A stretch of 64,000 nucleotides of DNA, taken from Phaeosaccion multiseriatum. Taxonomy: Eukaryota; Protista; Ochrophyta, other classes. Each line of letters begins with the position of its first letter. Within the stretch, counting starts at the first letter, position 1. The notes under the pieces were generated by a model. It saw only the letters and a list, made by a program, of their open reading frames with translations, was not told the origin of the DNA and ran no database searches. Below are positions 10,336 through 59,169 of this stretch, one piece after another. Location of the stretch: NCBI GenBank assembly GCA_965112735.1, contig OZ218950.1:2976001-3040000 (forward strand), read 5' to 3'. The position numbers were made by a program, and so were the translations under genes.

Positions 10336-13300
10336 ATGGGGAAGAGGAGGCGATACACGTGCGCTGATACCCGTCGATTCAGTGGTGGTGGATGTGCGAC
10401 TGCTGCAACCGTGGCAGTGTGCGGCTGCGCGGCGGTTCTGCAGAATGGGGTGGGTGTTTCAGGCTTGCATGTGGGCGCCCCTCAGCCCCTCGGTGCAGCT
10501 GCTGAGCGGCACGGTTTGAGACGTGGAGGAGGGGGAGGAGGAGGGGTAGGGGGAAGAGAAGGAGGAGAAGAAAGGAGCGGAGCCAGGGAGGATGTTAGGC
10601 CCCGGGCCTTACGATCGGTACCGTCGAATGGGGCATCAGAAAGAGATGGAGCGAGGCGGACGGGGGAAGTCATGGACTGGGTCGGTGGGGCGAGGCCCCA
10701 GCAGAGGAGTATTAATAGCAGCAGCAGTAGTAGTAGTCGGAGCAGTAGTAGTGGTAGCAACCCAGGGGATGCTACAGCGGCAGGAAGCAGCGTGCCTGCG
10801 GTTGGGCGACAGGCGCGTCGGCAGCAGCAGCCCCAGCAGGGGTCGGCTTTGTTGAGGACCAGCGCACCGGAAACTGGGCCGCGGAGGTCAATAGAGACAA
10901 AAACATCACCCCACACCCCCCCCTATAGAGCCGCTGCACGTGGTGGTGCCCGTTACAGCCATGGGAACAACCAGCCCAAAGCCAGAGGAGGGAAAGGAGA
11001 GAAGCACTGGCCCACTTCCCGACAGCCCATCTTTCAGACTCTTACAAACAAGCAGTTTACGTGTATTCGCAGGATCCAGAAGCTGGGTCGAATAGGCCTG
11101 CCGAAGGCGGCGGTGAAGGTGTTCAAGAAGGCCCTCAAGAATGCGCCACACCAGTTCGGAGAGCCGCTTTGCATGGAGTTCTACCGAGCGGGGCTCAACG
11201 CTCTCGGCAAGGCTGGCGAGGTCAGGCAAGCCCTCGAGCTGCTCAGGGAGATGGAGGCCAAGGGCGATGAAGCGCTCATGCCGGACGCTTCTTGCTTCAA
11301 CTGCTGCCTTCAGGTAAGAGCGGGTGGGCTCTCTATCCTTCTTGTTGGAGTGCACATCAGACCACCAACATCTGCCTTCCTGACTCTGCGTTTTGTTCGG
11401 TAGTGCCCAGTCTGTACATCTCATGTTAACGCTCTGTCGCCCCCCCCCCTCCCCCAGGCCGCAGCACGGGGCAAGAAGCCTCAGGTGGCCATGAAGCTCA
11501 TGGAGGAGATGCGGCAGAGAGGGGGCAAGTTCGCGCCAGATGACGTCAGCTACACATTCGCTGTACAGGTAGGTCAGGCAAAACGGGCAGACAGATAGAC
11601 AGACCGACCGACCGACAGGCCAGTAGGCTAGTATTGTGTAATGAGAAGAGGCCTTTCAGCCGGGGCTGGGGCAAGCAACTACCGAGTGGATGGGCGTTTG
11701 GCTTGGCAGCTGCCCAAGCAGGCGATACACCCCAGGTCCTCTTCCAACTTGCTAGTGCTGCTTCTTTTCCCCCCATATGTCTTCCTTGGTGCAGGCGTGC
11801 TCGAGGGTAGGGCAGGTGAAGAATGCGATGGCTCTGCTCGAAACCATGAAGATGGACGACATTAGGCCAAGTACGCGCATATACACGTACGCCATTCAGG
11901 CAGCGGCCAAGGTGTGTATGTATATTATGCCAGGAGGAGGGTGGTGGGCCTCTGGTGGTGTGTAGCACCGTCTCGTTCCGGCACACACACCACAGCCGAC
12001 CCTTCCCCCTCTTCTCTTGCTTACCCCTCCTCCCCCCCCTACACCCCTTGTGAACTCAATGTTACCATAGGCGGGAGCTCCTAATATGGCTCGTACCCTG
12101 TACGGCGAGATGCGGCTGAGGGGCCTCCAACCGGACTCCTTCACCTTCTCGGCTCTGATGGAGGTGAGTGAGGGTAGCGGGTGGGGGTAGGGGAGGGGAT
12201 GAGGAGAGAGGGGAGAGGAAGGGAGATTTGTCGGACCCCTTTCCCTTTGTCTACCAACGATGATGACGCGATTGAAGTTTGAGCTGCTCGCGTGCATGCT
12301 TCGTCCTCCCGGCCGTCAACAAACCCCACTCTCCTCCTCCTCCTCCTCCTCCGCCTCCTCCACCTCCTCCTCCTCCTTCGCCGTACTTCGATCGGACCCT
12401 CCTGCGTGATGATCGCAGTCGTGTGGAAAGGCAGGATTATGGGACAGAGCGCAGTCCACCCTCACAGACATGCGCTTGATGGGCATTGCCCCATGCGCTG
12501 CGTGCATGAACGGCCTCATCCTCGCGTATTCCAACGCGGGACTGAATAAGGAGGCGGAGAAGGTGCTCGATAGCATGCTTCTGCGCCACAGGGAAGACAG
12601 ACATTCGGAGAAGGGGGGGGTGGTGGTGGTGCAGCAGCAGCAGCAGCAGGAGGAGGAGGAGGAGCAGGGGGGGGAGAAGCAGGAGCAGCGGAAGGAGGAG
12701 AAGCAGCAGGAGCCCCTCCTGCCTGTGGCGGATAGCTACACCTTCGGGAGCGTCCTTGATGCCCATGCCAAGGCCGGAGACGCGGTTTCAGCGCTGCGAG
12801 TCTTGTCCAAGATGCCGATAGAGGGGGTGCCCATCACATCGCACTGCTACACCTCTGCCATTTGCGCGTGCGGTAAGGCGGGGAGGTGGAAAGATGCTCT
12901 GCGACTGTTGGAGCACGACATGTATTATCAAAAGGCGGCACCAGAGGCGCGCTGGAAGCACACGGGCTGGGTGCAGAAACGCCAAGCAATGTGGTTGTTC
13001 GAGGTGGCAGGCGTGCCGGGCAAGAAGCAGAACACCAGAGACAGGAAGGAGCGCCGCCCTGAGGAGAAGCACCAGCAGAAGCGCTGGGGCCGAGGTGGGG
13101 GGCTTGATGCGAGCCCCTTCCATGCTGCCATGAGTGCTTGTGCCCAGGCGGGGCAGTGGGAGGAGGCGGAGAGGCTCCTACCACGCATGCGAGCGCACGG
13201 GCTGACTCCGGGCAAGCTGGCGTACAACTCGGTGCTGCATGCCATGGCGAGGGCGAGTCAGTCCAAGCCGGCGCTGGCCTTGCTGTGGGACATGGAGGAT

Positions 13301-14446
13301 ACGTTTGGCGTCACGCCCGACGTTGTGTCGTTTAGCACTGTGATGGACGCATGTGGGAGGGCGGGCAACCCCAGGGGTGCGCTGCGGCTGCTCTACTCGA
13401 TGGAGATGCGGGGCATCAAGCCAGATGAAGTGGCCTTCGGGGTGGCAGTGGCGGCATGCGCTCGCACGGGCATGTTCCGCCAGGCCGAGAAGATTATCGA
13501 GTCGATGAAGGCGGAGTACGGCATCACGCCCTCCGAGGCGGTGTACACGGCAGCCATGCACGCATGTGCCCGAAGAGGCAACTGGCGAAGGGCCGTCTTG
13601 CTGCTGGAGCGCATGCAGACAGACCACGGAGGGCAGAGGAGCGAGACCTCCACGCGGGCCTTTGCCGCAGCTATCCACGCCTGTGGTGTGGCGGGCAACC
13701 CCAGCGCTGCGAGAGACGTGCTAAACCTCATGGCAGAGGCGGGTGTGGAGCCTGATGTGTACTGCCTCAATGCGGCCATCCATGCATGCGCAGTGGCAGG
13801 CGAGCCCACTCGATGCCTGCAGATTTTGTCGTCCATGCGCGAGCCCACCGTGGTGAGCTACAACACAGCCTTGGATGGGCTGGCGCGCGCGGGCCAGGCG
13901 CATGTCGCGACCGAATTGCTCGACAAGTTAGAGAGGACTGCGGGGCTCGTGGCCACGGAGATTACCTTCCTCACGGTACTCAAGGCCTGCTCTCGGTACC
14001 GATTCTCGAGAAGCATTGGCAGCTGGAGGTACCATGGCACAGGCTCAGAGGCGGATTTGGAGTCGAGGCAGCAGCAGGGACATGAGAGCCAACGCTGGGA
14101 TGGCGACCATCACAATGGGCCGGTGTGGGAGATTGTGGAGACTACCCTCGACGAGATGCGCAAGCGGGGCCACCCCGTCGGCACTGTGGCGCTTGGGTAT
14201 GCCGTGCAGGCTGCTCAGCAAGCGTGCGGGGACGGGGGAGGGGAGCCGGCGGCCAAGGCACTAGGCAGACTAAAGCTGCTCCAGAGAGAGGTGGAGGAGA
14301 GAGAGTTACAGGCGAAGCTTGCCACGGATCGCAAGGAGACGGAGTGGAACATTAAGCAGTTGCAGCTCAAGGAAGAGAAGAACAAGAGGAAGATGCTATT
14401 GCTCGCGAGGGAGAGGAGGGAGGCCGGGGAAGGCCCCCTCAGGTAG
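10336..14446 (+). CDS. Pentatricopeptide repeat (PPR) protein; exons 10336-11313, 11458-11568, 11795-11911, 12071-12163, 12419-14446
   Basis: Many ~35-aa PPR units (PDVVSFSTVMDACGRAG, PTVVSYNTALDGLARAG); phase-0 GT-AG introns restore the frame. Confidence 0.92.
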
Positions 14447-29127: not shown

Positions 29128-32100
29128 CCATGGGTTGGCAGCGAGGCGCGAGGCGCCCCAGAGCAAATGCGGACGACTGGATTGTAAAGAGCCCCACATT
29201 TCGCTATGGAACTAGTGCAAAGGGCCTACTGCCGAGGAACCCTGGCCTGGGAGGCCCCTGTGGCTCCTCAGGGCGAGAAGGGGGCAAGTATCCGTCGCCT
29301 GCCTTTCCTCTGGTGAGTAGTACGACGAAGGACGTCCACCGAGACGACGATGACGAAGAGCAGAGCTGTAGTAGTATTTTCGATGAAACTGAAAGTGGTC
29401 AAAGCTCTGCCTGTTCGTCCCAGCAGCGTGCAGCTGAAGGTGGAGGGCCAAGTCACTCGTTCACGCTCACAGAGCGCTGCCAGTGGCAAGGCACCTCGAG
29501 GAGGGAAGGCACTCTCCAGTACTCGCGGAGCCTATCCCCCACATCCACTCGGACTGCAGCTGTAAGGCTTGCCGTCTCCTCCGTGGAACAGGAAGGGCCC
29601 ATGGAACCGGAGTCGTTTTACCTCCCAGATCGCACAGCCGGCGCGGGGGGCGGAGTGTGTCGAAAGAATGTGCTGCTGTCAGCCTTTGTCACCCCCGCTA
29701 CCACGGGGGCAGCCGAAAGTAGCGTGAGCCCCTACGACATGGAAAGTAAGGCTGAGTGGGAGACGCGAGTGGCGAACATGACGCTGGGGTTGGCGGAGAC
29801 GGTTCGGGAGGAGGCGTTGTGGAGGGCCAAGAAACGGGGAATCGCCGAGCAGGATCCTCTGCCCCCTGTGCCTCAGGTCTACGACGCGTTCGAGTGTCTT
29901 CCTTCCACTAAGACACTGTCCCAAGCATGCTACGCTCAGCCGGACTTTTGGCCCAACTTCGAACACACAAAATACAGGTGTGAGGGGGGTTTGGTAGAAA
30001 GAAGGTGTAACGTCTGAGCGAGGCATTGTGGAATGGGCGGCTCGAGGCCTCGCTTCGGTTTGGGGGGGCATCAAGGATAGTCAACCCCCCCCTATGTAAA
30101 CAGGACGTCTAAGTCAAGTCCCCTTTATCCCCCCCCCCCCCCCACCGCGCACACAAATCCGCAGGGGCAAGATTCCCGTCGAGATGGAGAAGCGGAGAGC
30201 GGACTGGCTCATACCTCATGGTAGCGTGTACGCCAAGAAGGGGCAGAAACAGGTAGGATGATGCATTCCTCGCCTGCCTTCTTAATCTACTATTGCTGGC
30301 ATCATTGCCTCTCCCCATCTCACGAAGGGAGAGATTTGTATGCAGCCTGTTTCTCAAGAGGTGGGCATGTGTATACTCTTCAGTTGGAGAAACCTTTGAT
30401 GTGAAGGTGGCCTTCTCGGTGTCTTTGCACGTATTGTGTACAGACAGTGAGTGCAGTCTCTGGTCTCTCTACCTCTCCCCCTCTCTCCCTCTCTCTCCCT
30501 CTCTCTCCCTCCACCCCTCTCTCTCTCTAACACAAAACTCCGCCGCATTGTCGCTACCTTGCTGTGAGGCGCAGGTCCTGTTCTCAGACACCGGCGTCGC
30601 CCTGGGCCGCTGTGAGAACACCGCCTACTGGGAACGCTTGGCCTGGTTCAGGCGAATTCAAGAAGCGCGAGAGCAGGGTCAGAACGGCCAATCGTCGCTA
30701 CTCACGGCAATGTTCGCACAGCACGAGGCAGACGCCGGCAAGAGGTTCGACGCCGAGGTGGCAGAACTGCGGCTCAAGAAACTGCAGCAAAAGATTGCCC
30801 TGATGATGATGGGCAATCTCAAGTCTCATTTCCTAGCCTGGGCCAGGTACTCGGCCGCCTCGAAGAAGATTCGAAAGACTTTTGCGCTGCGAATGTTCGG
30901 CACCCAGCAGGCGTGCTTCTCTGCATTGCGCAGGCACGCACTGCAGAGCATCAAGGTGAAGAAGCTCGGGGCCAAGATCTTTATGGGTGCGCTGAGGGCC
31001 TGCTTCGTTGCCATCAAGGGGCACGCACACAAGAGTAAGCGAGTGCGTCAGTTCGTGTCCAAGAGCTTGGTGAGTGGGGCAAGAAAGAGGGAGAGGGACG
31101 AGAGACAGAGAGTGTGGGAGGGGGAGAGGAGGAGGAGGAGGAGGAGGAGGAGGAGGAGGAGGAGGAGGAGGAGGAGGAGGAGGAGGAGGAGGAGGAGGAG
31201 GAGGAGGAGGAGGAGGAGGAGGAGGAGGAGGAGGAGGAGGAGGAGGAGGAGGAGGAGGAGGAGGAGGAGGAGGAGGAGGAGGAGGAGGAGGAGGAGGAGG
31301 AGGAGGAGGAGGAGGAGGAGGAGGAGGAGGAGGAGGAGGAGGAGGAGGAGGAGGAGGAGGAGGAGGAGGAGGAGGAGGAGGAGGAGGAGGAGGAGGAGGA
31401 GGAGGAGGAGGAGGAGGAGGAGGAGGAGGAGGAGGAGGAGGAGGAGGAGGAGGAGGAGGAGGAGGAGGAGGAGGAGGAGGAGGAGGAGGAGGAGGAGGAG
31501 GAGGAGGAGGAGGAGGAGGAGGAGGAGGAGGAGGAGGAGGAGGAGGAGGAGGAGGAGGAGGAGGAGGAGGAGGAGGAGGAGGAGGAGGAGGAGGAGGAGG
31601 AGGAGGAGGAGGAGGAGGAGGAGGAGGAGGAGGAGGAGGAGGAGGAGGAGGAGGAGGAGGAGGAGGAGGAGGAGGAGGAGGAGGAGGAGGAGGAGGAGGA
31701 GGAGGAGGAGGAGGAGGAGGAGGAGGAGGAGGAGGAGGAGGAGGAGGAGGAGGAGGAGGAGGAGGAGGAGGAGGAGGAGGAGGAGGAGGAGGAGGAGGAG
31801 GAGGAGGAGGAGGAGGAGGAGGAGGAGGAGGAGGAGGAGGAGGAGGAGGAGGAGGAGGAGGAGGAGGAGGAGGAGAGACGAAGGGACGGAGAGAAGATGG
31901 GGAGGGTGGAGAGAACGGAGGAGGGAGGGAGTGAGAGAGGGCGGGACGTCGAGGAGAGAGAAAAGGAGAGAGAGGTCCTTTCCTACCCCAGCCACCTTGA
32001 TTGAGCGAGGGACGAAACTTGACATTCACCACTTTGTGCAAACACTCTCACCACCGCACTTTTCCTCCTGCCCCATGTGTTCTTTGTGCTCCACACTGTG

Positions 32101-42922: not shown

Positions 42923-45900
42923 TCACTGCTTGCGGGCCTTAAAGTCGAAACTCCACGGGCCCTCAACCTCGTAGGAGGCGTCGGACCCACTGAGAACCTG
43001 CTCGCGGCCGCGCAGGATGGGCTGTCCCGTGAAGGTGTTGTACTTGAGTTGCCTCGTCTCGCCCAGCACGCCCTGCCACTCGGTCAGGTCGGTGTCGGTG
43101 TCAGTGGGGTAGCCGACAATGAAAGTGTCTATGGAATGCGAGTGGCAACGTTCCACCTCTTGGCGATCTATCGTGTGCGCGTGTGGGGGGGGGTAACGGT
43201 CGTGTAACGGTCGGCGTCGGAGGAGCGTATGAGTTGGTCAGGTCGATAACATCCGAAGTCGAAGCCAAGCAAGGCAGGGGCAGGCAATTAGAGCTTCAAT
43301 TCGCAAGTCGCGGGCCTCCGAGGTCGGCCGGAGGACAAGGTATGTCAGGTGTGTATCGGGACAAACACCGGCAAGAAATCAAGAAGCCTCACGTGGGATG
43401 GGAAACGCAACAGCCACGCCCTCTGGAATCAAAATTAATGCAAGCCAATTGAAGCAGATTACTCACACTCAATGTGGAAGTCGAAGGAGTCCACCGTCTC
43501 GATGTAGACGGAGGCCCAGCCGCCGTTCTTTTGGTACAGCTCGCCGGTCTTCATCTTTTCGTCGTACCAAGGCAGGCAGGCCGCCCCGTCCTCGAACTTG
43601 GACAGGCGAGAGTGAACGAGGGCCAGCGCATCATGGCCTGAGGGATCAAGATCCGTCTACGGCGGGCGAGTAAAAGGGACAAAGTTAAGCACCAGTTACT
43701 TACACATATACACGAAGGTATCAACTTCCGTCAGGGGTGTTCGCTGTGTGTACAAAGACGAGCAAGAAAGGCTTCCCTCCTTGTGCGGCTTTGAGCGAGA
43801 GCGGCTACGTCGTGCGTGCTTGCCTGCGTCACTTGATTTCGACTCACCCACTCACCCACTCACTCACTCACTCACTCACTCACTCACCAGCCGGCGGCGC
43901 CGCTCTAGGAGCTTCGCCTCAGTCAAACGCTTCTTCTCGGTGAGCAGGTCGTTCTCCATATGCACGTCTCGCTTGTAGGTGCACGGGCCGTACGCGTTGA
44001 ATACATACATTAGTCCCCCTCCGCTGAGGGCATAGGCGCCAGGCTTGGTGATGATCTCCTCGTTGAGCACAACGCGCAGGTTGCCCTCGGCCAGACAGGA
44101 CTCCACCTCTTCGTCGAGCGGGCAGCCGGGGAAGAAGACGTCCCTGTCCATCACCTCGATAAGGACGCGGTCCGCCACGGAACCGTCTTTGTTCTTGAGC
44201 GACATGGCGTTGGCAGTGAAGTACGTCTGAGGCAGGCAGGTGGGTGGGGGAGGAGGAGGAGGAGGAGGAGGAAGAGGAAACAAAAACAGCAAAATCAGTG
44301 TAGGAAGCAGAAAGAGACTCTGTAGTCCGAGGACAAGCAGGTAGCGCAACTCACTCACCGGGTTGAGGCCATTCTCACACTCCAGGAAGGCATTCAGCTT
44401 CCAGTTCAGGTCAACCCTGGGACTCGTAATTCCATTGTACCAGCGCTCGTCACGCCCCTCAAAGAGAAATACTTGCTGCTGAAGACCGAAGATCATGGGA
44501 TCCCCACTGCCGCCTGGATTGTTGATGTCGTCGTTGTCTGTGAGGATGGTCACTGAGGAAAGGTCGGAGGTGCACACTGCCTCAGTGGTACACACGATGG
44601 CCTCCACCCGCAGCGCTCTCCCCACCGGGGCAGTGTCTAAGGGGGTGTACGTGCACTGGGAGGTGTTGCATCCTTCCCCTTCCAGCTGGACGCCGTCCAC
44701 AAGCCAGCGGTACAGCGCAGGCTGGGCATCCCCGCTCGCCTGGGCTTGGAACGTTACTGAATCTACGCCCATAGGCTTGGCGATGGTGTAAGGCTCTCCT
44801 GCGTCCAGCATCAGAGGTTTCCGATCCCCCTGATGACAACCGATCAGATCAGATCATGGGGTGAGGCAAGCAAGCGAAGCACACACGCACAAAATTATAT
44901 GTGGCGGAGTGCGGGAGGGGGGGGGGCACAGGCTGGGAATACGCTATACAGCTATGCATCCATGTGTTTCCCACTCTCTCCCTCCCCCTCTGCACCATGA
45001 CTTCTTCTCGGTGTTCCCTCTACCCCCCCTCTCTCTGCTCTACCCACTCGCTCCTGTCTCTCCCTCTCTCCCCCTCGCCCTCTTCCTCTCTCACCCCATG
45101 CCTCTCTCTCCCCTCCTCTCTTTCCGCCCATGCATGTCGCACCCCCCTCCTCTCTACCACCGCTCTGCTGCTCTCTCTCACCGCATCGCCCGACCGACCT
45201 CACCCATACCCCTCTAGCTGCCCTGTACCTCACCTGTCCAGCCGGCGGTGGGGGCGGCGACTCCACGGTCAGCATAGTCTCGGCTTGACTGCAGAGCTTG
45301 GCCGTGTTGCAAGCCTCAAGGCTGACCTCGAGCACCCCTACCTCAAAGGCCAGGAAGGTGCACACGAGGCCTTCGCAGCCGAGATTTCGATCTGCGACAA
45401 GCCAGCCCAGGACCATCTCCCTCCCGTCCGGATCGTAGGTGCCGCTCGCGTCGAACGTTACGGAATCGCCGTATTGGGCCGTGTATGGCGCGTCCTCGAA
45501 CGTGACAACGGGCACCTGCGAGTGCGGGAGGGAGGTGTGGGGCGGGGGGTGCGGCACGGGCGGGGGATCAGGGCAGGGGAGGGAGAAGAGAAGAGGCAAG
45601 AGAGGCAAAAGGAAAAGAGAAGAGAACAAAAGTAGCTAGGCAAAAAGCTTCTTGTTGTCCTCTCTCTTTCTGTGTGTGTGTCCGCGCAGCCGAAGCAGCC
45701 AGCAGAAGCAACTTACGCTGAAGGTTATATTAGTGGGACGTCCGGGCTCGTCGAGGCCGACAAGAGGAGCAAGGCCTCCGTAGTCTTCCAGGGCAGCCTC
45801 AAACGTTAGTGGGATTTCGGCCGGTCTCTCCTCGGGTGGAATGTCATCGGGCCTGTCGCACAGAGGCAAGATAAGAGTCAGGAGTGCGTACAGCAGGATG

Positions 45901-47916
45901 CTCCGCAGAGGAGATGAAGGAGAGTCAACCAAAGCTTCTTGCTTCGCCAAGTGAGTGAATCACGGCCGGCCGCTGACTTCGACGAGCAGTCCAACCATTA
46001 CCCCCCCCCCCCCCCCCAAACTAAACTCACTCTCTGCTCTCGAACTCGGTCTTGATGAGCTGGATCAAGTTTTCGTCAGCCTCCTTGTCGGAGGCAGGAA
46101 CTGAATCGGTGGCTAGGGACGGCAGCACATTTCAGGACGAGGAGGGAGAATGAGGCTTGTTTCAATTGCCAGAGAAGACAGCGGAAGGAGTATAGCGAAG
46201 CAAAAGTGAAAGCAAACATGCACCCCTTGTTCCCCACTCTCCTCTCTCGCAACCTCCCTCATCTGGTGAGTCTCACCATTTTCCCACTTATTCTCGAACA
46301 CTTCCTCGTTGAGTAAGTCCAAGGAAGTTCTTCTTCTTTGACTCTGCAGCAACAAAGCTCTTCTCTTTCTTCTTTGACTTTGCAGCGCCTCTTGCCGCTG
46401 CTCCTGCTGCTCCAGGCTCTCCTGGCGCTGTGGTGTTGTTGCCTGCCCAGACTCTGGTGGTTGACTGTCAGGGCCTTGGGAAGAGGGACTAACAGAGGCA
46501 CCCTCGACTTCCTCCACTTCCTCCACCCCCGTAAGCCGCCTCGAAGAAGTGTAGCTGTTGTTGGGGTCTATCTGGTCGCAGTCCGTGTCGCAGCTCAAAG
46601 TGGGGTCGCAGCAGGTATTCTGTTGTCCGAATCCGTCCCTGGGGTCTTCGTATTCCCTGCATTCGTTGAAGTCGATGAGAGGGTAGGGGTATTGCTCCTC
46701 GTTGTCAAACCTGTTGTGGAAGGTATAATCATAGTGATACCCCGGCCCAAAATACTCGGAGTTTGAGTAAAAGGTGAAACTGATGCTCGCGAGTGATGTA
46801 ACGCAAGGCTTCGAAAAGAAGGCCATGCACGGAGGGGAGGGCGGGAAAGATAAAGAGCAACAAAAGAAGGGAATGACGGACGTCAGAGTTGGCTTGTGCC
46901 CCCGCCGTCACTGCCGCCCAAGACAGCGTCGGAAAGTCGTACTTTCAGCCCCTAGTAGATATCCACCAAAGTTCTCGATCCCCCCACAGAGTAGCCAAGT
47001 CAGTCCACCGGTCAAGCAACAACTTGCTTGATACTTACGATGCAATAGAAGTCAGCGTCATGCAGGGGCGTGGGCTGAGCCTCCCCCTGGATCTCCAATA
47101 CCGCTCGAGGCACGCAAATGTTGGTGTCGGAGCAACACGGGCGGTCTGCATCGGGGTTGCAACCGTGAAATTGAATGCCACATTTCTGGCACGTACGTCG
47201 TCGGGATCCTGGGTCGGCACCTGGGACAACCGCACAGGTCATGTCGCCGCAGCACCATTGCCCTTGAGCCTCGAGACCCCATCGCGGCCCCGTCTGAGTT
47301 TCCAGGTTAGCTCCAGGGTACTCTTCTTCAAAGAGAGCGGCAAGGTCTTCTCCCGACTCAAGGCCGCCACTACACTCCTGCCCTTCCGTTTTGCATCCCT
47401 GCTTGGGCGGAAGGCGGAGGGTGGAAGGGGGTAGGGGCGGATGGCAGACAGGGGAAACAATCCGAGAGTGAGCGAGCGCACAATACGGTGTGTACGGAGA
47501 ATAGCGCATGGCCAAGCTAACCGCAGACACGGCCAGGCATAAGGGCAGGCATAAGGGCAGGCAGGCAGGCAGGCAGGCAGGCAGGTAGCACCAACCATGT
47601 CCCTCACCACTCACAACTCACCAGCAAGGAGACGCCAAGTGTGTTGAGCAGTCCCCCGAATTCCTCTCGCGACTTGTCCTGGTTGGCTTGCTGGGCGTCC
47701 GTTAGCCCGTTGCCTTCGATAACAACCCCCTCTCCTTCGATGAAGCTTAGGAGGTCTTGTATCTTGGTGTTGATTTCATCACTCACTTCGCTCGCCAGAT
47801 CGCCGATATCTGTTGCCCACGTATGGCACAGGGACGTCTCAAGGGTGAGGGGCGAAGTGCCCATGTCGGCCTCCAGCTGTGCGTTCCAGACCCCCAACCG
47901 GAAGAGAGAAAGGGCC

Positions 47917-47974
<58 letters not shown>

Positions 47975-50900
47975 AGGGTGAGGGGATGAGAACTTTTGGG
48001 GTCGGCCTTACCTACCCCAGCGCGGCGGGACGATAGCTATATCCAACTCACCTCAGCCGAGATTGTAAAGAGCTGTAAAGGACCAGAGTCTATCCCGCCC
48101 ACGAACTCGAACGCCAACGCAACTTCAAAGGGTACTCTTCCTCCAGTCAGCAAGTTAAAGTTAATCCCCGCTCCGACCACGGTGCTCCACCCAGCCAGTT
48201 TGTCTGATCCAAGAATTGCCATGGAGACAGCCGCACCACTCGACGGGCCTACCCCGTCTCCAATGGTTCTCGACATACACGTGGAAAAGGTCGCAACCAA
48301 CTTCTGTTTATCCCCTCGGAGGAGACTCAAGGGGTCTTCAAAGAGACTCAAGGGGTCTCTGAAAACATCGAGAAGGGAAGTGCCGCTGTCCAACCAAAAG
48401 CCGATGGTGAAATCGATATCGTTTGCCGCGAAGGCAGCAGCTATATCGACGTCCTCGACGTTACTTTCCCTGAAACTACGCGTCGCGAGCAGGGCGGTGT
48501 GAAACCGGTTGGTCCATAGCGATCCCAAACCAATGGTGAACTCAATGCCCCCCATGCCGAGCAAGAAGCCTAGGCAGGCAGTGCAGGCAAGGGGCAGGAC
48601 AATGATATGGCAAGATGAAATGGCAAGCACATAACAATAGAGTATTCAGACACGGGCGACGTTCTTCCCCTGGACCCCTTCCTTAGCTAGTAGCGGTATA
48701 TAATAAAGCAAGAGGAACAACAGCCTCCCCTGAGACGTACCGGGGCCAAGCATAGACAAGGGGCCCAGCCCCTGACCCACGGCGTTCCAGGGACTCAAAA
48801 AGAGAGTTACGAGCATTGCTACCGCGTAGAAGTTGCCGCAGTCGCGAGGCTCTAACCCGGCCAGCGGACGCGGATCGTCCATGACCTTGTTCCATGGAGG
48901 GTTGCCCCCCAGCCAGGCAAACGTGGGCACTATTTCCTTGTACATGAAGAGAAATGTGTCCGCCTGGCATGCACCGAAAGATTGAATCTCCGACTGAAAG
49001 CCGAGAGGGGGAGGGCACGTTAGTGGGGGGTGGGGGGGCGTATCTTCCAACTTCCAAGCAAGGATCACCCGCCCTCAATTCATAGCTACTTACGTACCTG
49101 CATCCAGTCCACCACATGCCCCAGAAGGTCTTTAAATCCGTTTTTGATCGGTGGTGGTGCGCTCGTCATGTTCTCGTTGACCCCATCATCCTTGAAATAA
49201 CTGATGACTCCCTGAATAGTCTTGCAGACGCTCTGTGCGGGACCACCACGCAGAGAGATGCAAAAAAAGAGGCGAGACATACAGAGAGAAAAGGGGAGGA
49301 GGCTCAGACACACTGGCTGCAGCTAGTAAGCTCAGACAAACAAACAACAACTCGTTAGTGGGAGGAGGATCTCATACACAGCAGATAGAGAGTTAGTGGG
49401 AGGGGGCTAGGCTCGCCTCGCCTCGCCTCGCCTCGAGCCCCACGCACGTGCCTCCATTGGCCCCGCCTTTTAACTTACGTTACACACTCCCTTGGTTTGC
49501 TCGCAGAAATCTCCGCATTCTTGTTCGAGATCTAAGAGTGGAGTGACCGTTGCACTTGTACAGTCTCCCCGTGTACGTTCGCACCAATTGATGCAGTTTT
49601 GCTGGCCACCACAATAGGACTTGCACTGTGTAAAGCAACTGGAATAGGACGGGTTGGGAGGGGATAGGTTAGCATGGTTGGGGTGGAGAGAGCTGCTTAG
49701 CTAGAACACATGAGGAGAAAATGTGGGCGTGTTGCAACCAAAAGGGCTCGGGTTCACAGCAAAGTTGGAGTTCGCGCCGCGTGTACATGTGTGTGCTATT
49801 TACTTACGGTTGTCCGTCGCAGCTTGTAATACCCTGGTCGCAATCTTCCGTGCGGACACAACTGCGGTCACAGCTGCGCGTGCATCCCGAGTCACAGTTC
49901 CTCCCTAAAAAGTTGCAGCCTGCAGAGCAGACGGGAGGGAAGCAGCGTGTTCGTTAGTCTATGAAGGGCAAGAAGACGAAGAAAGTTGTTGCGCCCAACT
50001 CACCCGTAAGGCAGCCCCGGTCACAACCTCGGAAGCAGCGCCCGCCATGATCGCAGCTCAGAATCTTGCTCCCGTCACAGTCTCCTGTGAGATAGGAGAA
50101 TGGGCGGGAAGCTTTGTGAGGAGAAGAGAAGGATGCTTGCCGCAGAGGGGGCCCCAGTTCAGTGGACGAAATCACTCACGGGTACAAGAGCCATTACAGG
50201 AACAGCGTTTTCCCCCAATCTTGCAGGGTGCTGCGCAAAGATCGGCAGCGAGGTTGCAGACGCCTTCTGCTAGTTCTGCTGCCACGCCTAACGCTTCACA
50301 TCCAGCTTCGCATACATATGCGATGCCGTCGCATACGTCGGAGCATTCCGAGGAAATCTCTTCCAACTTTCGGTGCGGGTGGTGCATGGGGTCATCGTCG
50401 TCCTCTCCATGCTCGTTGTACGTCTTCGCCGTTGCCCTCTCCTCCTCTGGGAGGCTGAGACGTCGTCGGGAACGCTGGACCATCCTGGAAACATGCGGCC
50501 ACGCACACAGCCAGTTCAAAGATCAAGAACAGAGATGCATGGTGGAGAGTGAGAGAGAAGGGAGGGAGGGAGGTGCGAGTGGTGGGCAGACATACATGGC
50601 TCGCCGCATGCCTTCTTCCCCCCGACCCATCCCCGCCCAGCCAAACTCAGCCCCCACTCACGATTTCATGACGGGGTACTCGATGCCGCTTATGCGTGGG
50701 TTCTCCACTTCCTCCAATATCTTGCGCGTCATGTCATCGAAGTCTCTTTGTAGTCGCTTCGCGGCGGACTTGCTTCCGCTGCTGGCGTCAGGACCGAGCT
50801 TCCGTCGCGGGCCGTTTTGGTGTATGTTCGCGTCGAATTTCGAGTGTTGGAAAACGTCTTCGAGAGGACAATACGGAGGCCGAATCGAATCGATGATCTC

Positions 50901-53866
50901 TCGCTGGTGGTGTTCGATGGCGTCTCCGTTGTCCTCTGCTTCTCTCTTGAGCCCTCCCAGTCGGTCAGCTCGTATCGCCCACTCGCTATACTCAGACAGG
51001 TTGAGACGGACAGGGAGAAGGAGAGAGGATTAAACAACGAGGTGCGTGCGTGCGTGTGTGAGGTGGGGTGGGGTGGGAGGGGGATGTGGCATGGATTGCA
51101 CCTCAAGTATGCCGTATGGACAAATGTACAACTGGACCTCCTTCACTTCACTCACGCGTCTGTCAGCAGCAGAGTGACGGCTCCTTGTAGACGCCGGCCT
51201 CGCTCGTCGGTCATAGCGGACAAGAAGGCCTGCAGGAAGGTGTCGAGGGCCTTTTCGGAGTCGTTTGTCGCCTCGCCAAGATAGGGCAATGTCTTCTCAA
51301 GACCGTACTGCTCGTTGGCCAGTTGGTCCTCCACGTTGTTGACTGCCTCGCATGCGCGTGGGGTCAGCTCGGAAACCATCTTGGAGAGGGCGTCGGTCAA
51401 GTACGTGATGGCGAACGAAGAACACGATTGCTCTTCGTCAGCGTCAGGTGCCATCTGCGAGGCAGCAGCTGTCGTGGCACAAGGCAGGATGGAAGTGGGA
51501 AGAACGCGCCGCCAGCCCAGACCCTCAACCGGCGAGTGCACAATCTTGTCGATGGCGCGGAAGGCGGCAGCGTAGAGCCGGGGCTCGACAGAGACCTCCT
51601 GGCTGTACGACTGCGAGAGAGAGGGGGGGCGGGGGGTGGGGGGGTTTATACAGGGGTTATTAAGGGCGAGATCTTGCAGGCAGACACGCTAGATGATATG
51701 GGACTGTGCCCCCTTTTCAAACAAGAACAGTCTGACAAAGGAAACGTCAACGACAGCCAGACCAACATAGTGCACTCTGCCACATCGCCTCTTCGACGGG
51801 TTGGAGCCGAGCAGCCACCACAAGCGAGTCGGGGGGGGGGAGGGGGGGCAAGTCTCACGTACCAAGAGGGAAGCACGGAGGAGGTCACCAAAGGCGAGGT
51901 TGTCACGGTGGAGGGCGAGGGTCACGTGGGTAGAGACATTGTACCCTCGAGACGTCTTCAGCAGTGGCGAAGAGGGCCGGCAACAGGTATGCGCAGTGGG
52001 CACGCAGATAGGGGAGGGAGGAAGGGGTTAGGGAGGGAACGCACAAAGGACACACGGAGGAATGGGAACAGTTGATGGATCGAAGGAAGCAAAGGAAAGG
52101 AGGGATGGAAGGAAGGAGGGAAGGCGAGCAGGAAGGAAGGGACGGCGGAAGGGAGGGTACATGGATGAGAGGGAGACAGGGAAGGGAGAGAGGCAAGAGA
52201 AGGAAGAAAGGGAAGGACGCAAGGAAGGGATGGAGAGTGGGTGGGAGGGCAGGAGTGAGGGCGGCCGGAGGGTGGACTAGGAGGGAGGGAAGGAGAAAGG
52301 GAAGGAGGGAAGCAAGGGCGGAAGAGGGGAAGAAAAGGAAGAGAGAAAGGGAAGGAAGGAAGGAAGGAAGGAAGGAAGGAAGAGGCAGAGGAAGGGAGAA
52401 GAAGCGAGCGAAGGGAGAGAAGAAAGAAAGGAACGATGGAACGACGGAAGTGGGCTTACCGTGGCCGAGTGTACGATGCCCTTGGGGAGGTAAAGCGAGT
52501 CCCCGACAGTCATGCTGACATTCGAGCAGCGCATCGAGTCTCGAATGAGGTGCGTCGTGCAGCCCTCGATGGACCCCATCTTTGCCTCCATCTGAGTCAC
52601 GAAAGGGGAGAGACAGAGGACAGGGAGAGAGAGAGAGATGATTAGCATCGACGACTAAACCTCAACCACTCTGGACAGCAGCAAAAGCAAGAGCAGGCAC
52701 AGCAAAAAGATCAGAGTCTAGCCTATGGGTGATGAAGGGAGGGAGTTGGTTGTTATGTGTGCAACTTTCCTTCCTCACCATATCGGAGAAGTCTGCCGCT
52801 GTAAAGGGGTGGGAAGGGTACTTGCTGCGCTCCTGCGAGAGGCGCCACGACACGAGACGAAGGGTGGGTGGTGTGGCGGGGAGGGGGGAGAGCAAGAGGG
52901 ACATTTAGCGAGCAAACGACAGGGAGGATTGCCACTTTGCAAGTGGTCAAAGCATTGGGTTGACAGACAGAGGTGCGAAGGGTATAGAGGACGAGGACGA
53001 GGCAGGATGAAGGTCAGACATGACTGGCTGTGGCAAGATAGAGTCAGAAAGACCGATATTCATCTCGACAGTTCTCGCTCCCTGGCGCCTTGCTTGCCCC
53101 CCCCCCCCGCGCGCCCCTCCCCCACCTCCCCATTCACACCCCCCTGTTTCGCGCTCTCTCACCTCCTGGAGATCAGCGAAGGGCATGCAGAGCTCCCACT
53201 CTTTCTTGCCCTGCAGCTGCACCACGAAGACATCGTACATGTCTGTGTGCGGCTTGAGCGCCACTGCTTCAGGGCCGGAGTGATCTGTGTGTGGCAAATC
53301 GCGAGGGAGAAAAAAAGAAAAAGGGGTTCAGAGAATGCACGAGTCTACTACCAGAGCTCTGCGCTCATGGTGCGTTGTAGGTCTCCTTTGTTGGCAATTG
53401 GCTCTCGCCTCTGCGTCTGATAACGTTCTGTGGCGGATACTCAGTTACACCCTTTACACCCTGCTGTCAATGGCACTGCACACTGTCCTGCTCGGGAGGA
53501 AAGACAAAAAGGTGAAAGGAAAACACTCCAAGAACGCCGTGGCGGACTTACAAACGTTCATGCTGGTGGTGGGGTGGGTCGGGTGCGGTAGACAGACAGA
53601 GAGCGCCGATCATGTCGGGGACGTAGGCAGGGGCAGATGGGTGGACAGAGTGGCAGGCCGGCAGGCATACGCAGGGGGGGAGACAGGGAGAAGGGGGGGG
53701 GGGGGAGGGAGGAAGAAAGAGCAGGAGGAAGAAGCGGAAGGGAGGAGAGGCGGGTGAGCGAGACGACATGCAATGCGTAAGCCATGTTTCCCGGGGCGGA
53801 AGTCTGGCTGGCAGCCCGGCATACAGGCCGCAAGCAAGTGGGCAGACAGACAGGCAGGCCGGCCGG

Positions 53867-53901
<35 letters not shown>

Positions 53902-54748
53902 ACACGTAGGCTGGCAGGAGGCCAGATATACACCCCCAACACTACAGGACCCACTTCGTCAGGCAATAAGTCAAGACACGACACTTGCTACGGGGGGGGG
54001 GTTCTCGCTATGACGTCGAGGAAGAGATACGACCGAGGAAGAGAGACAGAGACAGATAGACAGAGAGAAAGAGAGAGTGAGTGTGTGTGAGAGAAAGAGG
54101 AGGGCGCGCGCTTACCTCACAGGAAGGCTGAGCTGCTCCTGGAGCTCGCGGTGGAACTTCTGAAGCTGACTCGACATGCTCGCCTCGTTCTGAACCGTGA
54201 TGACCGCGGAGCCTTTCCTGTCCTCCTCGACGAACTTCACAAAGGCCTCGTACGTCATATCTGCGGGCATGGCCGTGCTGCTTCCCCAGCTCCTGAACTG
54301 GACCTCGTTCTGGCGGATGAGGGGCTCCAGGTCACGCTGGGTGGGAAGCAGCAGTGCGGACGGGCAGCAGGCAGGGAGGGAAGGGTTAAGAGTTGGCCTG
54401 GTACCAGCCCGTGTGTGTGGCTGGGCATCTTTCCTCACCTCAGCAACAGAAAGCGGGAAGGTGTTCACCAGAACCGTGGATCCGGAGGCCGACACGCCCA
54501 GACCGCCATTGTACAACGCGTGGGTGCTGCTCTTCCAAGCACCATCAGCCGCAGTAGCAGCGGCCGAAGTGCTATTGGCGTCCAAGTATGCCTGAGTCAC
54601 GGAAGCTCTGCCCAAGGCACTGCGATGCAGGAAATGCGCCCCGTACTTGCTCTCAAAGAAGGTGGAGACCTTCGAGGGGCCTCCTACGAGGTAGGAGAGG
54701 GCACTGAACCTCGCCCCCTCGGAATCAATTGCTGGTGGGAACTGTTGT

Positions 54749-54780
<32 letters not shown>

Positions 54781-55135
54781 ACCTTTCCAGCGCGTCTGGG
54801 AGGTCAGGGGGGTACAAATACTTTGCATGAGCGATCATGTTCCACGGACCAAGTGAAGGCACACCAGTGATGCAGCAAAGAAGGGGGAGGAGCGCAGGAA
54901 GGGGTTTTACGCAGTTCTTCATGGGGGCAAAGTGAAGAATTCAGACCCAAGTCACACGAGGGGCGCTCCTTCTTACATGGTGAGCGGATGGGGAGAAACC
55001 GAAGGAAGCTGGAGGACTTCCTGCTGCTGGCGAGGGCAATCCGAAGAGGTAAAGCACGAGCGTGCTAAACAACACACGGGACCGAGAGCGCGCCCGCTCA
55101 CCAACGTGGGAACCTCTCCCAGGCATGCTAGACAT
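42923..55135 (-). CDS. Large multi-exon protein: signal-like N-terminus, ROX/NO66-type JmjC 2OG-Fe(II) oxygenase, Cys-rich repeats, PKD-like and VWD/root-cap-like (GDP) domains
   Basis: MNVY..ALKPHTDMYDVFVVQLQGKKEWELC, GDSLYLPKGIVHSAT, STHVTLAL; C-rich exons; VTFDASGTYDPDG; GDPMIFGLQQQVFLFEG. Every intron checked is GT-AG with matching phase. Confidence 0.75.
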
Positions 55136-56246: not shown

Positions 56247-57433
56247 TTAAAGTATGAGGACGGCATGGTTTGGGGGCGTGTCCCCACCGCTTCTCCTTCT
56301 GTTGCCGACCACACCGCTATAGAATCCTTTCGCCAGCCACCCGATGCCTCTCGGCACCGCCATGGATATACGCTTGGCCGCGCCTTCCGCCTCACGGTCG
56401 TGATGGGCTGTTGCTGTTACTATTGCTGATCCTGCTGCTGCCGCTGCTGCCTCCGACCTTGAGCCTGATTCCAGCCCAGTTATACAGGGCGTATCTTCCC
56501 CTCCCTCCTCCTCCTCCTCCTGCTGCTGCTGCTGTTGCTGCTGATCCTCCTCGGGCAGGAATAGCCCATCTTTCGTGGTAATCGTCGATCGCTCCAGATC
56601 CACAGACTCGAACAGGGCCGCCCGGTCCGGGTCCTCGTCCAAGACAATATCCAGCTCCTCCTGCTCCTCCTCCTCCTCCTCCTCCTCCTCCTCCTCCTCC
56701 TTTCCGTACTCTTGCTCCATCCTACTCCTCATCCTTCTACTTCTGCTGCCGATGCCCTCCTCGTCAATTTCCAGCACACGGTCACTTAAATCTTCCACGG
56801 CGGAAGCCATGCTGTAAATGCTGTTGCTCGCTTCGCTACTGCTCAACAGGCTATTCTCTCTCCTCGCCTTGCTAGCGCTGCCCCCCGCTCCAGATGGCGG
56901 CCGTCCCTCCGAGTAGAGGGTTCGGGCGCCTCCTCCCCCCCTATCTCCCGGCCCTGCCCTTCGCTCCATTTCGTCCTCCTCCCTCAGGAACATGACCGCC
57001 TCTTGCGATGACACTTTCAGCCTCGCGTCCCGCAATTCCCTCTTCAAGTCTTCAATCTCCAGCGTGAGCCTCATTTCCGCCCCGTCTTGCTCCTCCATTG
57101 TCCTCCTCACGGTCTCACGCAACGCTTGCACGAGGCCGTCTCTCTCCTCGATTTGCCGTTTCGAGCTCGCCACCTCCAGTTGAAGGCCCTTCATGGCAAC
57201 ACACATTTCTTCTCTATCGAGCATGTCTACGAAAACGCTTCCGAAACTACCACCCCGACTCAGACTCGCTCTTCTCTGTCCCATGGGCACCGGTGAATCA
57301 CCTGCTGCTGCCCTGCCCTCCCCCCTCTGTGGCTGTAACCTCTCCGAGTCAGATCGCATCATGGCGAGCTCCTGTTGCTTGACGCCCGCACTCGGCTCGG
57401 CGTGCCCCCCTTTCGCCTCCTGCTGAATTATCA

Positions 57434-57504
<71 letters not shown>

Positions 57505-58484
57505 TGCTGTAGCTCCAGGAAGGCGATGTGAGCCTGAGCCATTTGCATCTTCTCCTTGAGCTTGCTCTTTTCACTCGCCAGTGCCGCCACCTCCATGGCG
57601 AACTTGGCCTGGACCTTGCTCTCCAGCTGCTGGACCTGCTCTGCGGATATCCAATAACATCCGCTGCCTGCTTCATTGGCACCACCAGTCCTACTGGAGA
57701 GTCCCTCTTCTTGCTCTTCATCCTGCCCTCCACCTTGCAGCACCTCCTGCTGCTGCTGCTGCTCCAGTCGCCCTCGGTTTGCTCTCTCCCCTCCTCCTTT
57801 GGTTGATATAACACCCGCCTCTGCTCGAGCGAGAATCTCGTCAGTGTCCACCGGTCGTCCCAGCCCGGCCCAAGCAAGCTCGAGCTCATGCTCGCCCTGA
57901 GCCTTCTTCAGAAGTAGCGCCATGGCCTCTTGTAGCCGGCATCGGAGGCCATCAAGTTCCCTCATCGCCTCTCCACCACCGCCGCCGCTCCCGTCACCGA
58001 CGAGGCTTCCGCCAGCTCCAGGGCGGCTTTGGTGGGTTCTCAGCAGGGCCCTACATTGGTCGAGCGCCCGGCACAGCTGCACATCCAGAAGCACGGTCAG
58101 CTCCATCCCCTGTTGCGACTGCCGGCCGACCTGATCAAACAGTGCAGTGGCGCTTTGGTGGGCCTCTTCTCGCTCCCCCGTCGCCTGTTGCGGGTACTGG
58201 TGTTCGTGTATGTGGCCCCCATCTTGCTGCCGCCCATGCTCCCCATTGAGGTCGGTGGTCTGAAGCGAGGAGCTCGCCTTGTGCGGAGAAGGGAACGAAT
58301 CGGAGGACACAGCCGCTGCTGCGTTTCCTTCGCGAGCCCTCAGAGCCGTTCCGATCCTCTCGGCGATGTCAGGAGCACGCTCCTGATACCTCTTTAATCG
58401 GCTCGTCATGAAGCTGGCAATAGCCGCAGGTTGGGGCTGAGGCGAAGGGTACTGTTGGTCTGTATGCCCCTGCCCCTGCCCCTG

Positions 58485-58532
<48 letters not shown>

Positions 58533-59099
58533 CTGTGTCCCTCGGCCACCACTCTCTCCGTCACGGTTCTGCGCATTTGAGGCCGTACGCCGCTTCCGTC
58601 GATATGACTGGAGATGTCGCCGGCCCGACTCCACTGCAGCTGTCGACGTTCCCCGCGGGGCCTTCTTCTCATGCGCCACTCTTGCCACAGGCTTACCGAC
58701 TGGCCAAGAGGCCTTGCTACCACCAGAGACAGGGGACCGCTGGCCAGTCACAAGCTCCCCTGCCTTGTCCTGCTCGGGGGGCTGCCGACCAGGTCCATCT
58801 GCATCATCGGTGGCGGCCGACGGGGGAGGGCCAACGGGAGGAAGAGGCACCTGGGCAGAGCTACCGACGCTTCTCACCACTCCAGGATGTGGAACCTCCC
58901 TCTGGTAGGCCTTAGCTCCCACCCCTGCTGGTTTGCTGTCATGGGGAAAGCCTAGTCGTTGAGGGGGTGGGCCAACGACGGGTGCTGTTGATCGAGGTGG
59001 TGGCCGAGCAGGCGACGGCGTGCCAAAGGTGGGCAACCCGAGACTTTCTGCACCGTCTGCAGATGCGTCTTCTACAATGTCGCTGAACCAATTCTCCAT
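56247..59099 (-). CDS. Single-ORF low-complexity coiled-coil hypothetical protein (~950 aa)
   Basis: 2.85-kb open frame with heptad-like segments (LESKVQAKFAMEVAALASEKSKLKEK; LEVASSKRQIEERDGLVQAL), poly-Q/E. Confidence 0.75.
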
Positions 59100-59169
59100 C
59101 GCAGGAGGCAGAGCCACGCAAAGGGAGGAGGATCAGGAGCAGTAGGGGGAAGTGCCAGCCTGTGAGTCA

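Follow-up and report, generated by a model that had tools for sequence, protein, structure and literature searches.

The minus-strand locus at positions 55135 to 42923 of a 64,000-nucleotide (nt) stretch of the Phaeosaccion multiseriatum genome (contig OZ218950.1; the whole stretch is called the window below) raises the question of whether a JmjC oxygenase of the ROX type and a long Cys-rich, surface-type tail are parts of one exported protein. An original prediction, made from the letters alone, had described a secreted JmjC enzyme fused to a polyprotein that is cut at R-x-L sites and may modify its own peptides. The sequence observation behind it is real and goes beyond chance. Our analysis points to one 27-exon gene with a signal-peptide-like leader, an intact ROX module and the tail, whose product would be a luminal hydroxylase tethered to a secreted protein of the matrix or adhesion type, and for this combined reading we regard the evidence as evenly balanced. 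Its parts differ in strength. The JmjC-tail fusion is probable, the secretory reading is plausible, and cleavage and self-modification are unsupported.

Reconstruction of the gene

The gene was rebuilt from the sequence, and only GT-AG splice sites of consensus strength were admitted. The locus is intron-rich and of eukaryotic type, with 27 exons running from the ATG at 55135 to the TGA at 42925-42923 (Table 1). All 26 introns are of the GT-AG class, every donor reads GT[AG]AG or GTACG, and all phases are compatible. Intron lengths range from 84 to 553 nt with a median of 184 nt. The spliced frame of 6,384 nt comprises 2,127 codons with zero internal stops, which bears out the single phase-consistent frame that had been proposed, with ends that coincide with the proposed coordinates, although the frame closes only when an 11-nt micro-exon is included.

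Coding potential was scored for each exon as a codon-versus-intron log-likelihood, with the scored exon excluded from training. The expected frame was the best one in 26 of the 27 exons, and the score was above zero in 25 of the 27. The exceptions were exon 1, which carries the leader, and the 93-nt exon 8, both with negative scores. Open reading frames (ORFs) on the plus strand over the locus gave no Pfam family match.

The micro-exon fills a frame gap, since exon 3 ends in phase 2 and exon 5, which holds the HxD motif, needs one base, with 830 nt lying between them. Every candidate of the form ag-11nt-gt/gc in this gap was enumerated, and only the segment at 53562-53552 (CATGAACGTTT) had an acceptor rich in pyrimidines together with a GTAAGT donor and a product of the form N-x-Y. 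Read through its split codons, it encodes S-M-N-V-Y, in the context LPV-SMNVY-HSGPEAVALKPHTD. This segment contributes N-V-Y, a strand of the JmjC fold, and restores the frame; if it is omitted, the whole protein is frameshifted. We take the corresponding part of MINA53 to be SNVYITPAGSQGLPPHYD, in which the spacing from the N-x-Y strand to HxD equals that obtained with the micro-exon. A core strand encoded by an 11-nt micro-exon is a caution for gene prediction.

Several introns contain microsatellites, at 43840-43887 (minus strand), 47920-47975 and 53840-53900. A (GTGA)n run at the donor of intron 25 provides donors in all three phases, a (CA)n run is found in intron 17, and (CTGC)n runs occur in introns 3 and 18.

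The JmjC module

Pfam, PDB, Atlas and homology searches were run exon by exon or on the enclosing ORFs, and motif counts, Cys spacing and hydropathy were computed on the concatenated exons. Exon 5 alone matched Pfam JmjC_2 (PF08007) with an E-value of 9.4e-9 and 35.3 bits against a cut-off of 22, and the ORF containing exon 7 matched the C-terminal part of the same profile (E 6.6e-4, 19.7 bits). Against PDB sequences, the exon-5 region matched MINA53, NO66 and YcfD best. The iron ligands and the lysine that binds 2-oxoglutarate (2OG) were placed by aligning PHTD...GKKEW with PHYD...GEKHW (PHYDD...GEKHW) of MINA53.

The clade is recognised by an Fe(II)-binding HxD...H triad and a 2OG-binding Lys or Arg 13 residues past the Asp. 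The triad is complete here, its HTD part lying in exon 5 and its second His in exon 7 (GIVHSAT), so that the intact H-x-D...H JmjC domain of the original prediction is confirmed. The HxT motif, which is given for strand 8 of the MINA/NO66 clade (Iyer et al., 2010, Table 1; PMC2938197), was found as STHVTLAL in exon 8.

Outside this core the module has diverged. In PDB sequence searches with the N-terminal ORF and with exons 7, 9 and 10, no ROX match was obtained, and the exon-5 region alone matched. Among 1.84 billion representative proteins, the N-terminal JmjC ORF of 240 amino acids (aa) matched only P0001, a coiled-coil protein of repetitive sequence that Pfam likens to ATG16/FPP; since this match was rejected as spurious, the ORF has no credible relative there. 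ROX enzymes have a tri-domain layout in which the barrel is followed by a dimerisation domain of ~90 aa and a winged helix of ~130 aa (PMC6006756). Exons 9 and 10 provide 259 aa past the barrel, a sufficient length for both domains, and gave no PDB, Pfam or Atlas signal. The Atlas look-alikes of exons 9 and 27 were uninformative. Because the profile and PDB matches and the catalytic motifs are kept while the N-terminal half is without detectable relatives, we class the module as a divergent member of the ROX clade that is apparently still active.

One gene or two

The union of the JmjC module with the Cys-rich and PKD-like part depends on exons 9 to 11. Intron 9 (51155-50986) measures 170 nt and intron 10 (50661-50485) 177 nt, against the gene's median of 184 nt, and both have phase-compatible junctions and good acceptors. 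In contrast to these gaps, the upstream neighbour ends 1.1 kb ahead of the ATG of this gene. Codon scores peak at exon 10 (+0.33, in the expected frame), and its coding signal extends upstream of its first Met, before which the open stretch holds no in-frame ATG; it therefore cannot open the coding region of a new gene. On the minus strand between 52600 and 48900, no ATG with a hydrophobic leader was found. Exon 9 supplies 151 aa, compared with the ~220 aa that ROX enzymes need past the barrel (PMC6006756), and a protein ending at the TGA of intron 9 would thus have a truncated ROX layout.

Other observations weigh against the combined reading. An in-frame TGA is present at both critical donors, those of exons 9 and 10, so that unspliced RNA would terminate the protein there. 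No winged-helix signal was detected in exon 9 or exon 10. In the searches made, no homologue was found for any exon beyond the JmjC core, which leaves the architecture without cross-species support; for exon 10 these searches were a word search, a metagenome scan and a PDB sequence search.

The same stop codons would fit two adjacent genes on the same strand, namely an intracellular ROX-like JmjC gene that ends immediately past exon 9 or exon 10, at the TGA at 51154-51152 or 50661-50659, followed by a Cys-rich/PKD-like gene. Termination at the first TGA would leave 187 aa past the second His, a length presumably close to that of bacterial YcfD, and exon 11 opens with S-M, whose ATG at 50483 would be usable. 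The characterised ROX enzymes are, moreover, all intracellular (PMC6006756). However, the two gaps (170 and 177 nt), which have strong splice signals, are too short for a 3′ untranslated region, a promoter and a 5′ untranslated region, the coding signal of exon 10 precedes any Met, and a gene starting at 50483 would place the Cys ladder and the PKD-like modules behind MVQRSRRRL, without a leader. Two genes are thus unlikely. Since the gaps are typical introns, the phases fit, exon 10 codes before its first Met and no alternative leader exists downstream, one gene is favoured; we judge it likely from the letters of the locus, and we infer a single transcript.

The Cys-rich and PKD-like tail

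The JmjC module is followed by a charged linker (aa 536-690) with 17 R, 9 K, 8 H and 32 D/E, and then by a CxxxC ladder with 32 Cys per 180 aa and 16 CxxxC spacings. The Cys-dense repeats described earlier, CDSGCTRSCDRSC in exon 13 and CFRGCDRGC in exon 12, are part of this ladder. Past it come an orphan middle region, a second Cys-rich region, two PKD/Ig-like modules and an orphan C-terminal domain. Exon 17 had no relatives in the metagenome scan, and its AlphaFold2 single-sequence model reached a predicted local distance difference test (pLDDT) score of 31.5.

Of the helical or hydrophobic region that had been described, a short hydrophobic stretch was recovered, but hydropathy gave no convincing transmembrane segment. 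Besides the leader, a 19-residue window reached a mean hydropathy of 1.5 in one place only, a strand of the first PKD-like module. Pfam and PDB searches of the exons and ORFs of the gene returned no kinase or SH2 match.

The PKD-like modules carry the signature FDASGxxDPDG...W, as had been noticed, but the likeness is weak. Exon 23 matched PKD_4 with E 0.0094 and PKD with E 0.07, at 16.4 and 13.6 bits, below the Pfam cut-offs of 27 and 23.5 (PF00801/PF18911). The AlphaFold2 model of exon 24 is a 7-strand beta sandwich of low confidence (pLDDT 51.7), for which Foldseek returned no significant fold match.

The C-terminal domain contains the motifs GDPM, in place of GDPH, and GVLGET. A GDP-type VWD/root-cap-like domain had been assigned to it, a resemblance that gained no support in Pfam, PDB-sequence, Atlas or homology searches. 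Exons 24-27 had no Pfam match even at E 10, no homologue in the size range 179-569 aa turned up when the 325-aa C-terminal ORF was used in a word search, and Atlas held no root-cap/VWD-type cluster for this part.

R-x-L motifs

All five basic motifs that had been said to separate the Cys-dense repeats exist, namely PRRKL (aa ~595), SRRRL (~649), HRKL (~680), SRRL (~1458) and RRRRL (~1979). Their places are different from those claimed, since three of them are in the linker ahead of the ladder, one is past the second Cys-rich region and one is in the C-terminal domain. The wider pattern R[RK]L has one site in the helical extension (GRRL), three sites in the linker, one past the second Cys-rich region and one in the C-terminal domain, and no site separates the ladder repeats. 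Counting from the leader, R-x-L first occurs at aa 173, within the JmjC module.

It has been documented that RXL domains are removed from diatom biosilica proteins (PMC5525289), and by analogy the R-x-L sites here could be protease signals that free the enzyme and dice the tail into wall peptides, hydroxylated beforehand in cis. The three sites clustered in the linker right past the enzyme module would suit such cutting, as would the excess of motifs over residue shuffles (6 R[RK]L observed vs 0.87; 8 [RK][RK]xL vs 1.4), a control that ignores the natural clumping of basic residues. However, none of the sites falls between ladder repeats, RRRRL and GRRL fall within the C-terminal domain and the helical extension, respectively, and the diatom RXL domain begins no more than ~30 residues past the signal peptide (PMC5525289), where no such domain is found here. 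The R-x-L-punctuated polyprotein of the original prediction is thus not borne out, and dicing of the tail after modification in cis is improbable. Release of the enzyme from the tail by a cut within the linker is possible.

The linker (50180-50985, minus strand) has many Arg, His and acidic residues, and 3 of the 6 R[RK]L sites lie in it; these could be hydroxylation targets, not cleavage sites. Since ROX enzymes hydroxylate Arg and His, the basic and His-rich motifs might be substrates of the enzyme, which is speculation. It would be a long shot to go further and propose that the alga carries a small family of secreted ROX-type enzyme-substrate fusions, in which the JmjC module hydroxylates the Arg or His of its own linker (R[RK]L and His-rich motifs) or the Asp of the Cys-Asp ladder during transit through the endoplasmic reticulum (ER). 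Such hydroxylation of its own linker or ladder, if true, would be a modification of matrix proteins undescribed in any eukaryote.

The putative export leader

In exon 1, an Arg-rich n-region of 20 residues is followed by a hydrophobic core of 13 residues and by P-S-P-A-A-G ahead of the likely cut. The leader that had been proposed is indeed contained in exon 1 (VLFSTLVLYLFGLPSPAAG) and could be spliced in phase onto the JmjC module, the GTAAGA donor and the matching acceptor both being in phase 0. Plastid targeting was considered for the sequence PAS/F, 13 residues past the hydrophobic core, and was set aside as unlikely, since the c-region would be too long.

Intron 1 contains a second signal-peptide-like ORF at 54782-54922 on the minus strand (MKNCVKPLPALLPLLCCITG...), in a frame that differs from that of exon 2; it may be an alternative first exon or a product of chance.

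The export of the protein has its own counter-evidence. Codon usage gives no signal in exon 1, a leaderless protein would result from a start at the in-frame ATG 54828, just upstream of exon 2, a poly-Q run directly past the leader is unusual in a secreted protein, and the leader-like ORF at 54922 was counted as weakening the use of exon 1. Taken together, these points would allow one gene in which exon 1 is unused, the start codon is the ATG at 54828, whose frame is that of exon 2, and the whole protein of ~2,000 residues is intracellular, with a Cys ladder that binds metal instead of forming disulfide bonds. CxxxC ladders are able to bind metals, and poly-Q together with a ROX lineage is typical of nuclear proteins. 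However, the good donor of exon 1 is matched by a phase-0 acceptor 33 nt into the ORF of ATG 54828, and the leader has a textbook n-h-c layout with A-x-G ahead of the predicted cut. The second leader-like ORF lies upstream at 54922, and PKD/Ig-like modules and a Cys content of 3.5%, gathered in ladders, are features typical of proteins outside the cytoplasm. An intracellular protein without exon 1 is therefore distinctly improbable. We lean towards the use of the export leader, partly because the tail is of the surface type and needs one.

That the locus is decaying or mis-assembled and its frame an accident of splice-site choice is scarcely credible: the frame guided the choice of splice sites, exons 1 and 8 have negative codon scores and the window is microsatellite-rich, but 2,127 codons without a stop run across 27 exons, all splice sites used are of consensus strength, 25 of the 27 exons were positive in the correct frame when out of training, and the catalytic residues are kept.

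Predicted protein and surrounding features

In the favoured reading of one gene with an export leader, the protein would consist, in order, of the leader, the ROX-type JmjC module with its helical extension, the charged His/Arg-rich linker, the CxxxC ladder, the orphan region, the second Cys-rich region, the two PKD/Ig-like modules and the orphan C-terminal domain. This putative protein hydroxylase would enter the ER and act in the ER or Golgi lumen, which offers Fe(II), 2OG and O2. It would stay tethered, at least initially, to the matrix- or adhesion-type protein with which it is secreted, and side chains of its own tail or of co-secreted proteins may be hydroxylated.

Three other features of the window are included in Table 1. 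An exact-sequence look-up of the 956-codon ORF upstream of the gene found no public record.

Table 1. Exons of the reconstructed gene and neighbouring features of the window (positions of the window; residues in aa)
Feature	Position	Strand	Residues	Content
Exon 1	54977..55135	-	1-53	ATG, Arg-rich n-region, core VLFSTLVLYLFGL, AAG/S cleavage-like site; donor cat/GTAAGA; signal-peptide-like by eye
Exon 2	54439..54795	-	54-172	poly-Q, then N-terminal part of JmjC module; log-likelihood score +0.22 in expected frame
Exon 3	54116..54336	-	173-245	phase 2 at end
Exon 4	53552..53562	-		11-nt micro-exon CATGAACGTTT; S-M-N-V-Y over junctions
Exon 5	53163..53284	-	250-290	HTD iron ligands, GKKEW lysine; Pfam JmjC_2
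Exon 6	52779..52832	-	291-308	
Exon 7	52460..52591	-	309-352	second iron-binding His, LPKGIVHSAT
Exon 8	51863..51955	-	353-383	STHVTLAL with HxT motif
Exon 9	51156..51610	-	384-535	helical extension past JmjC; donor gc/GTGAGT overlaps in-frame TGA 51154-51152
Exon 10	50662..50985	-	535-643	bridge exon, charged, His-rich, PRRKL; donor tc/GTGAGT overlaps in-frame TGA
Exon 11	50180..50484	-	643-744	SRRRL, HRKL, acidic run, CxxxC ladder begins
Exon 12	50004..50084	-	745-771	CFRGCDRGC
Exon 13	49808..49919	-	772-808	CDSGCTRSCDRSC
Exon 14	49479..49638	-	809-862	Cys ladder ends
Exon 15	49098..49232	-	863-907	
Exon 16	48741..48993	-	908-991	short hydrophobic stretch AVAMLVTLFL
Exon 17	48052..48569	-	992-1164	Gly-rich orphan region
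Exon 18	47622..47876	-	1165-1249	
Exon 19	47039..47398	-	1250-1369	second Cys-rich region
Exon 20	46277..46808	-	1370-1546	Cys-rich part, SRRL, then acidic, Gln-rich, basic low-complexity stretch
Exon 21	46031..46112	-	1547-1573	
Exon 22	45717..45852	-	1574-1619	
Exon 23	45234..45515	-	1620-1713	PKD-like module (VTFDASGTYDPDG...GWLV)
Exon 24	44359..44829	-	1714-1870	second PKD/Ig-like module, then GSGDPMIFG opening the C-terminal domain
Exon 25	43888..44226	-	1871-1983	ERRRRL at end
Exon 26	43467..43656	-	1984-2046	
Exon 27	42923..43167	-	2047-2127	TGA at end; WQGVLGET motif; AT-rich past stop
956-codon ORF	56247-59117	-		single ORF, rich in poly-Q and coiled coil; ends 1.1 kb upstream of the start of the JmjC gene
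Microsatellite	~31070-32000			~0.9 kb of pure trinucleotide repeat; open in six frames (poly-E, -G, -R, -P, -L, -S)
658-codon ORF	12470-14446	+		intronless; pentatricopeptide-like repeats

Comparison with known systems

AspH and the collagen prolyl and lysyl hydroxylases are ER-luminal Fe(II)/2OG oxygenases that act on Cys-rich or matrix proteins before export. The algal gene shares this concept with them, but they belong to other branches of the superfamily, not to JmjC/ROX, and are separate from their substrates. Diatom silaffins, cingulins and Sin1 are, like the predicted product, secreted precursors with basic-x-Leu motifs (PMC5525289). Their RXL domain adjoins the signal peptide and precedes Lys/Ser- or Asn/Gln-rich regions, whereas the layout here differs and no homology to them was found.

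With MINA53 (RIOX2), NO66 (RIOX1) and YcfD the algal module shares JmjC_2, HxD...H, the 2OG lysine, the N-x-Y strand, HxT and a helical region past the barrel. These enzymes are ~370-640 aa long, nuclear/nucleolar or cytoplasmic, and end in a winged helix (PMC6006756), and the ROX/JmjC_2 enzymes studied so far all act inside the cell on ribosomal proteins. The algal gene adds a leader and ~1,500 residues of surface type, shows no recognisable winged helix and has an N-terminal half that lacks detectable relatives. The signal-peptide-like leader argues against an intracellular ROX location and a ribosomal substrate.

The premise that ROX enzymes occur only inside the cell is itself out of date. 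An expansion of the MINA/NO66 clade was described in Monosiga brevicollis, in which extracellular JmjC domains are predicted to be fused to Cys-rich GCC2/3, Ig, disintegrin or Sushi domains and, inside the cell, to SH2 or kinase domains (Iyer, Abhiman, de Souza, & Aravind, 2010; PMC2938197). These proteins were predicted to hydroxylate surface proteins, and for stramenopiles the same work gave extracellular versions of the FIH1 type and not of the MINA type (PMC2938197). The kind of extracellular MINA/NO66-type fusion was therefore already predicted in a choanoflagellate in 2010, and a literature search with the phrases "extracellular JmjC" and "secreted JmjC" found no later paper. Likened by the description of their architecture, the Monosiga fusions and the predicted algal protein would have in common a JmjC domain of the MINA/NO66 type, an extracytoplasmic context and Cys-rich and Ig-like modules in one polypeptide. 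They differ in that no membrane span, kinase or SH2 domain is seen in the algal gene, in that its JmjC module is combined with a CxxxC ladder, with PKD-like modules and with orphan domains, and in that the host is an alga.

Extracellular ROX versions have so far been a computational prediction of 2010 from this one choanoflagellate. If the reading given here is true, the algal fusion would show that the design arose or spread beyond choanoflagellates, and an enzyme that shares one polypeptide with its candidate substrate would be a tractable case for finding hydroxylation targets.

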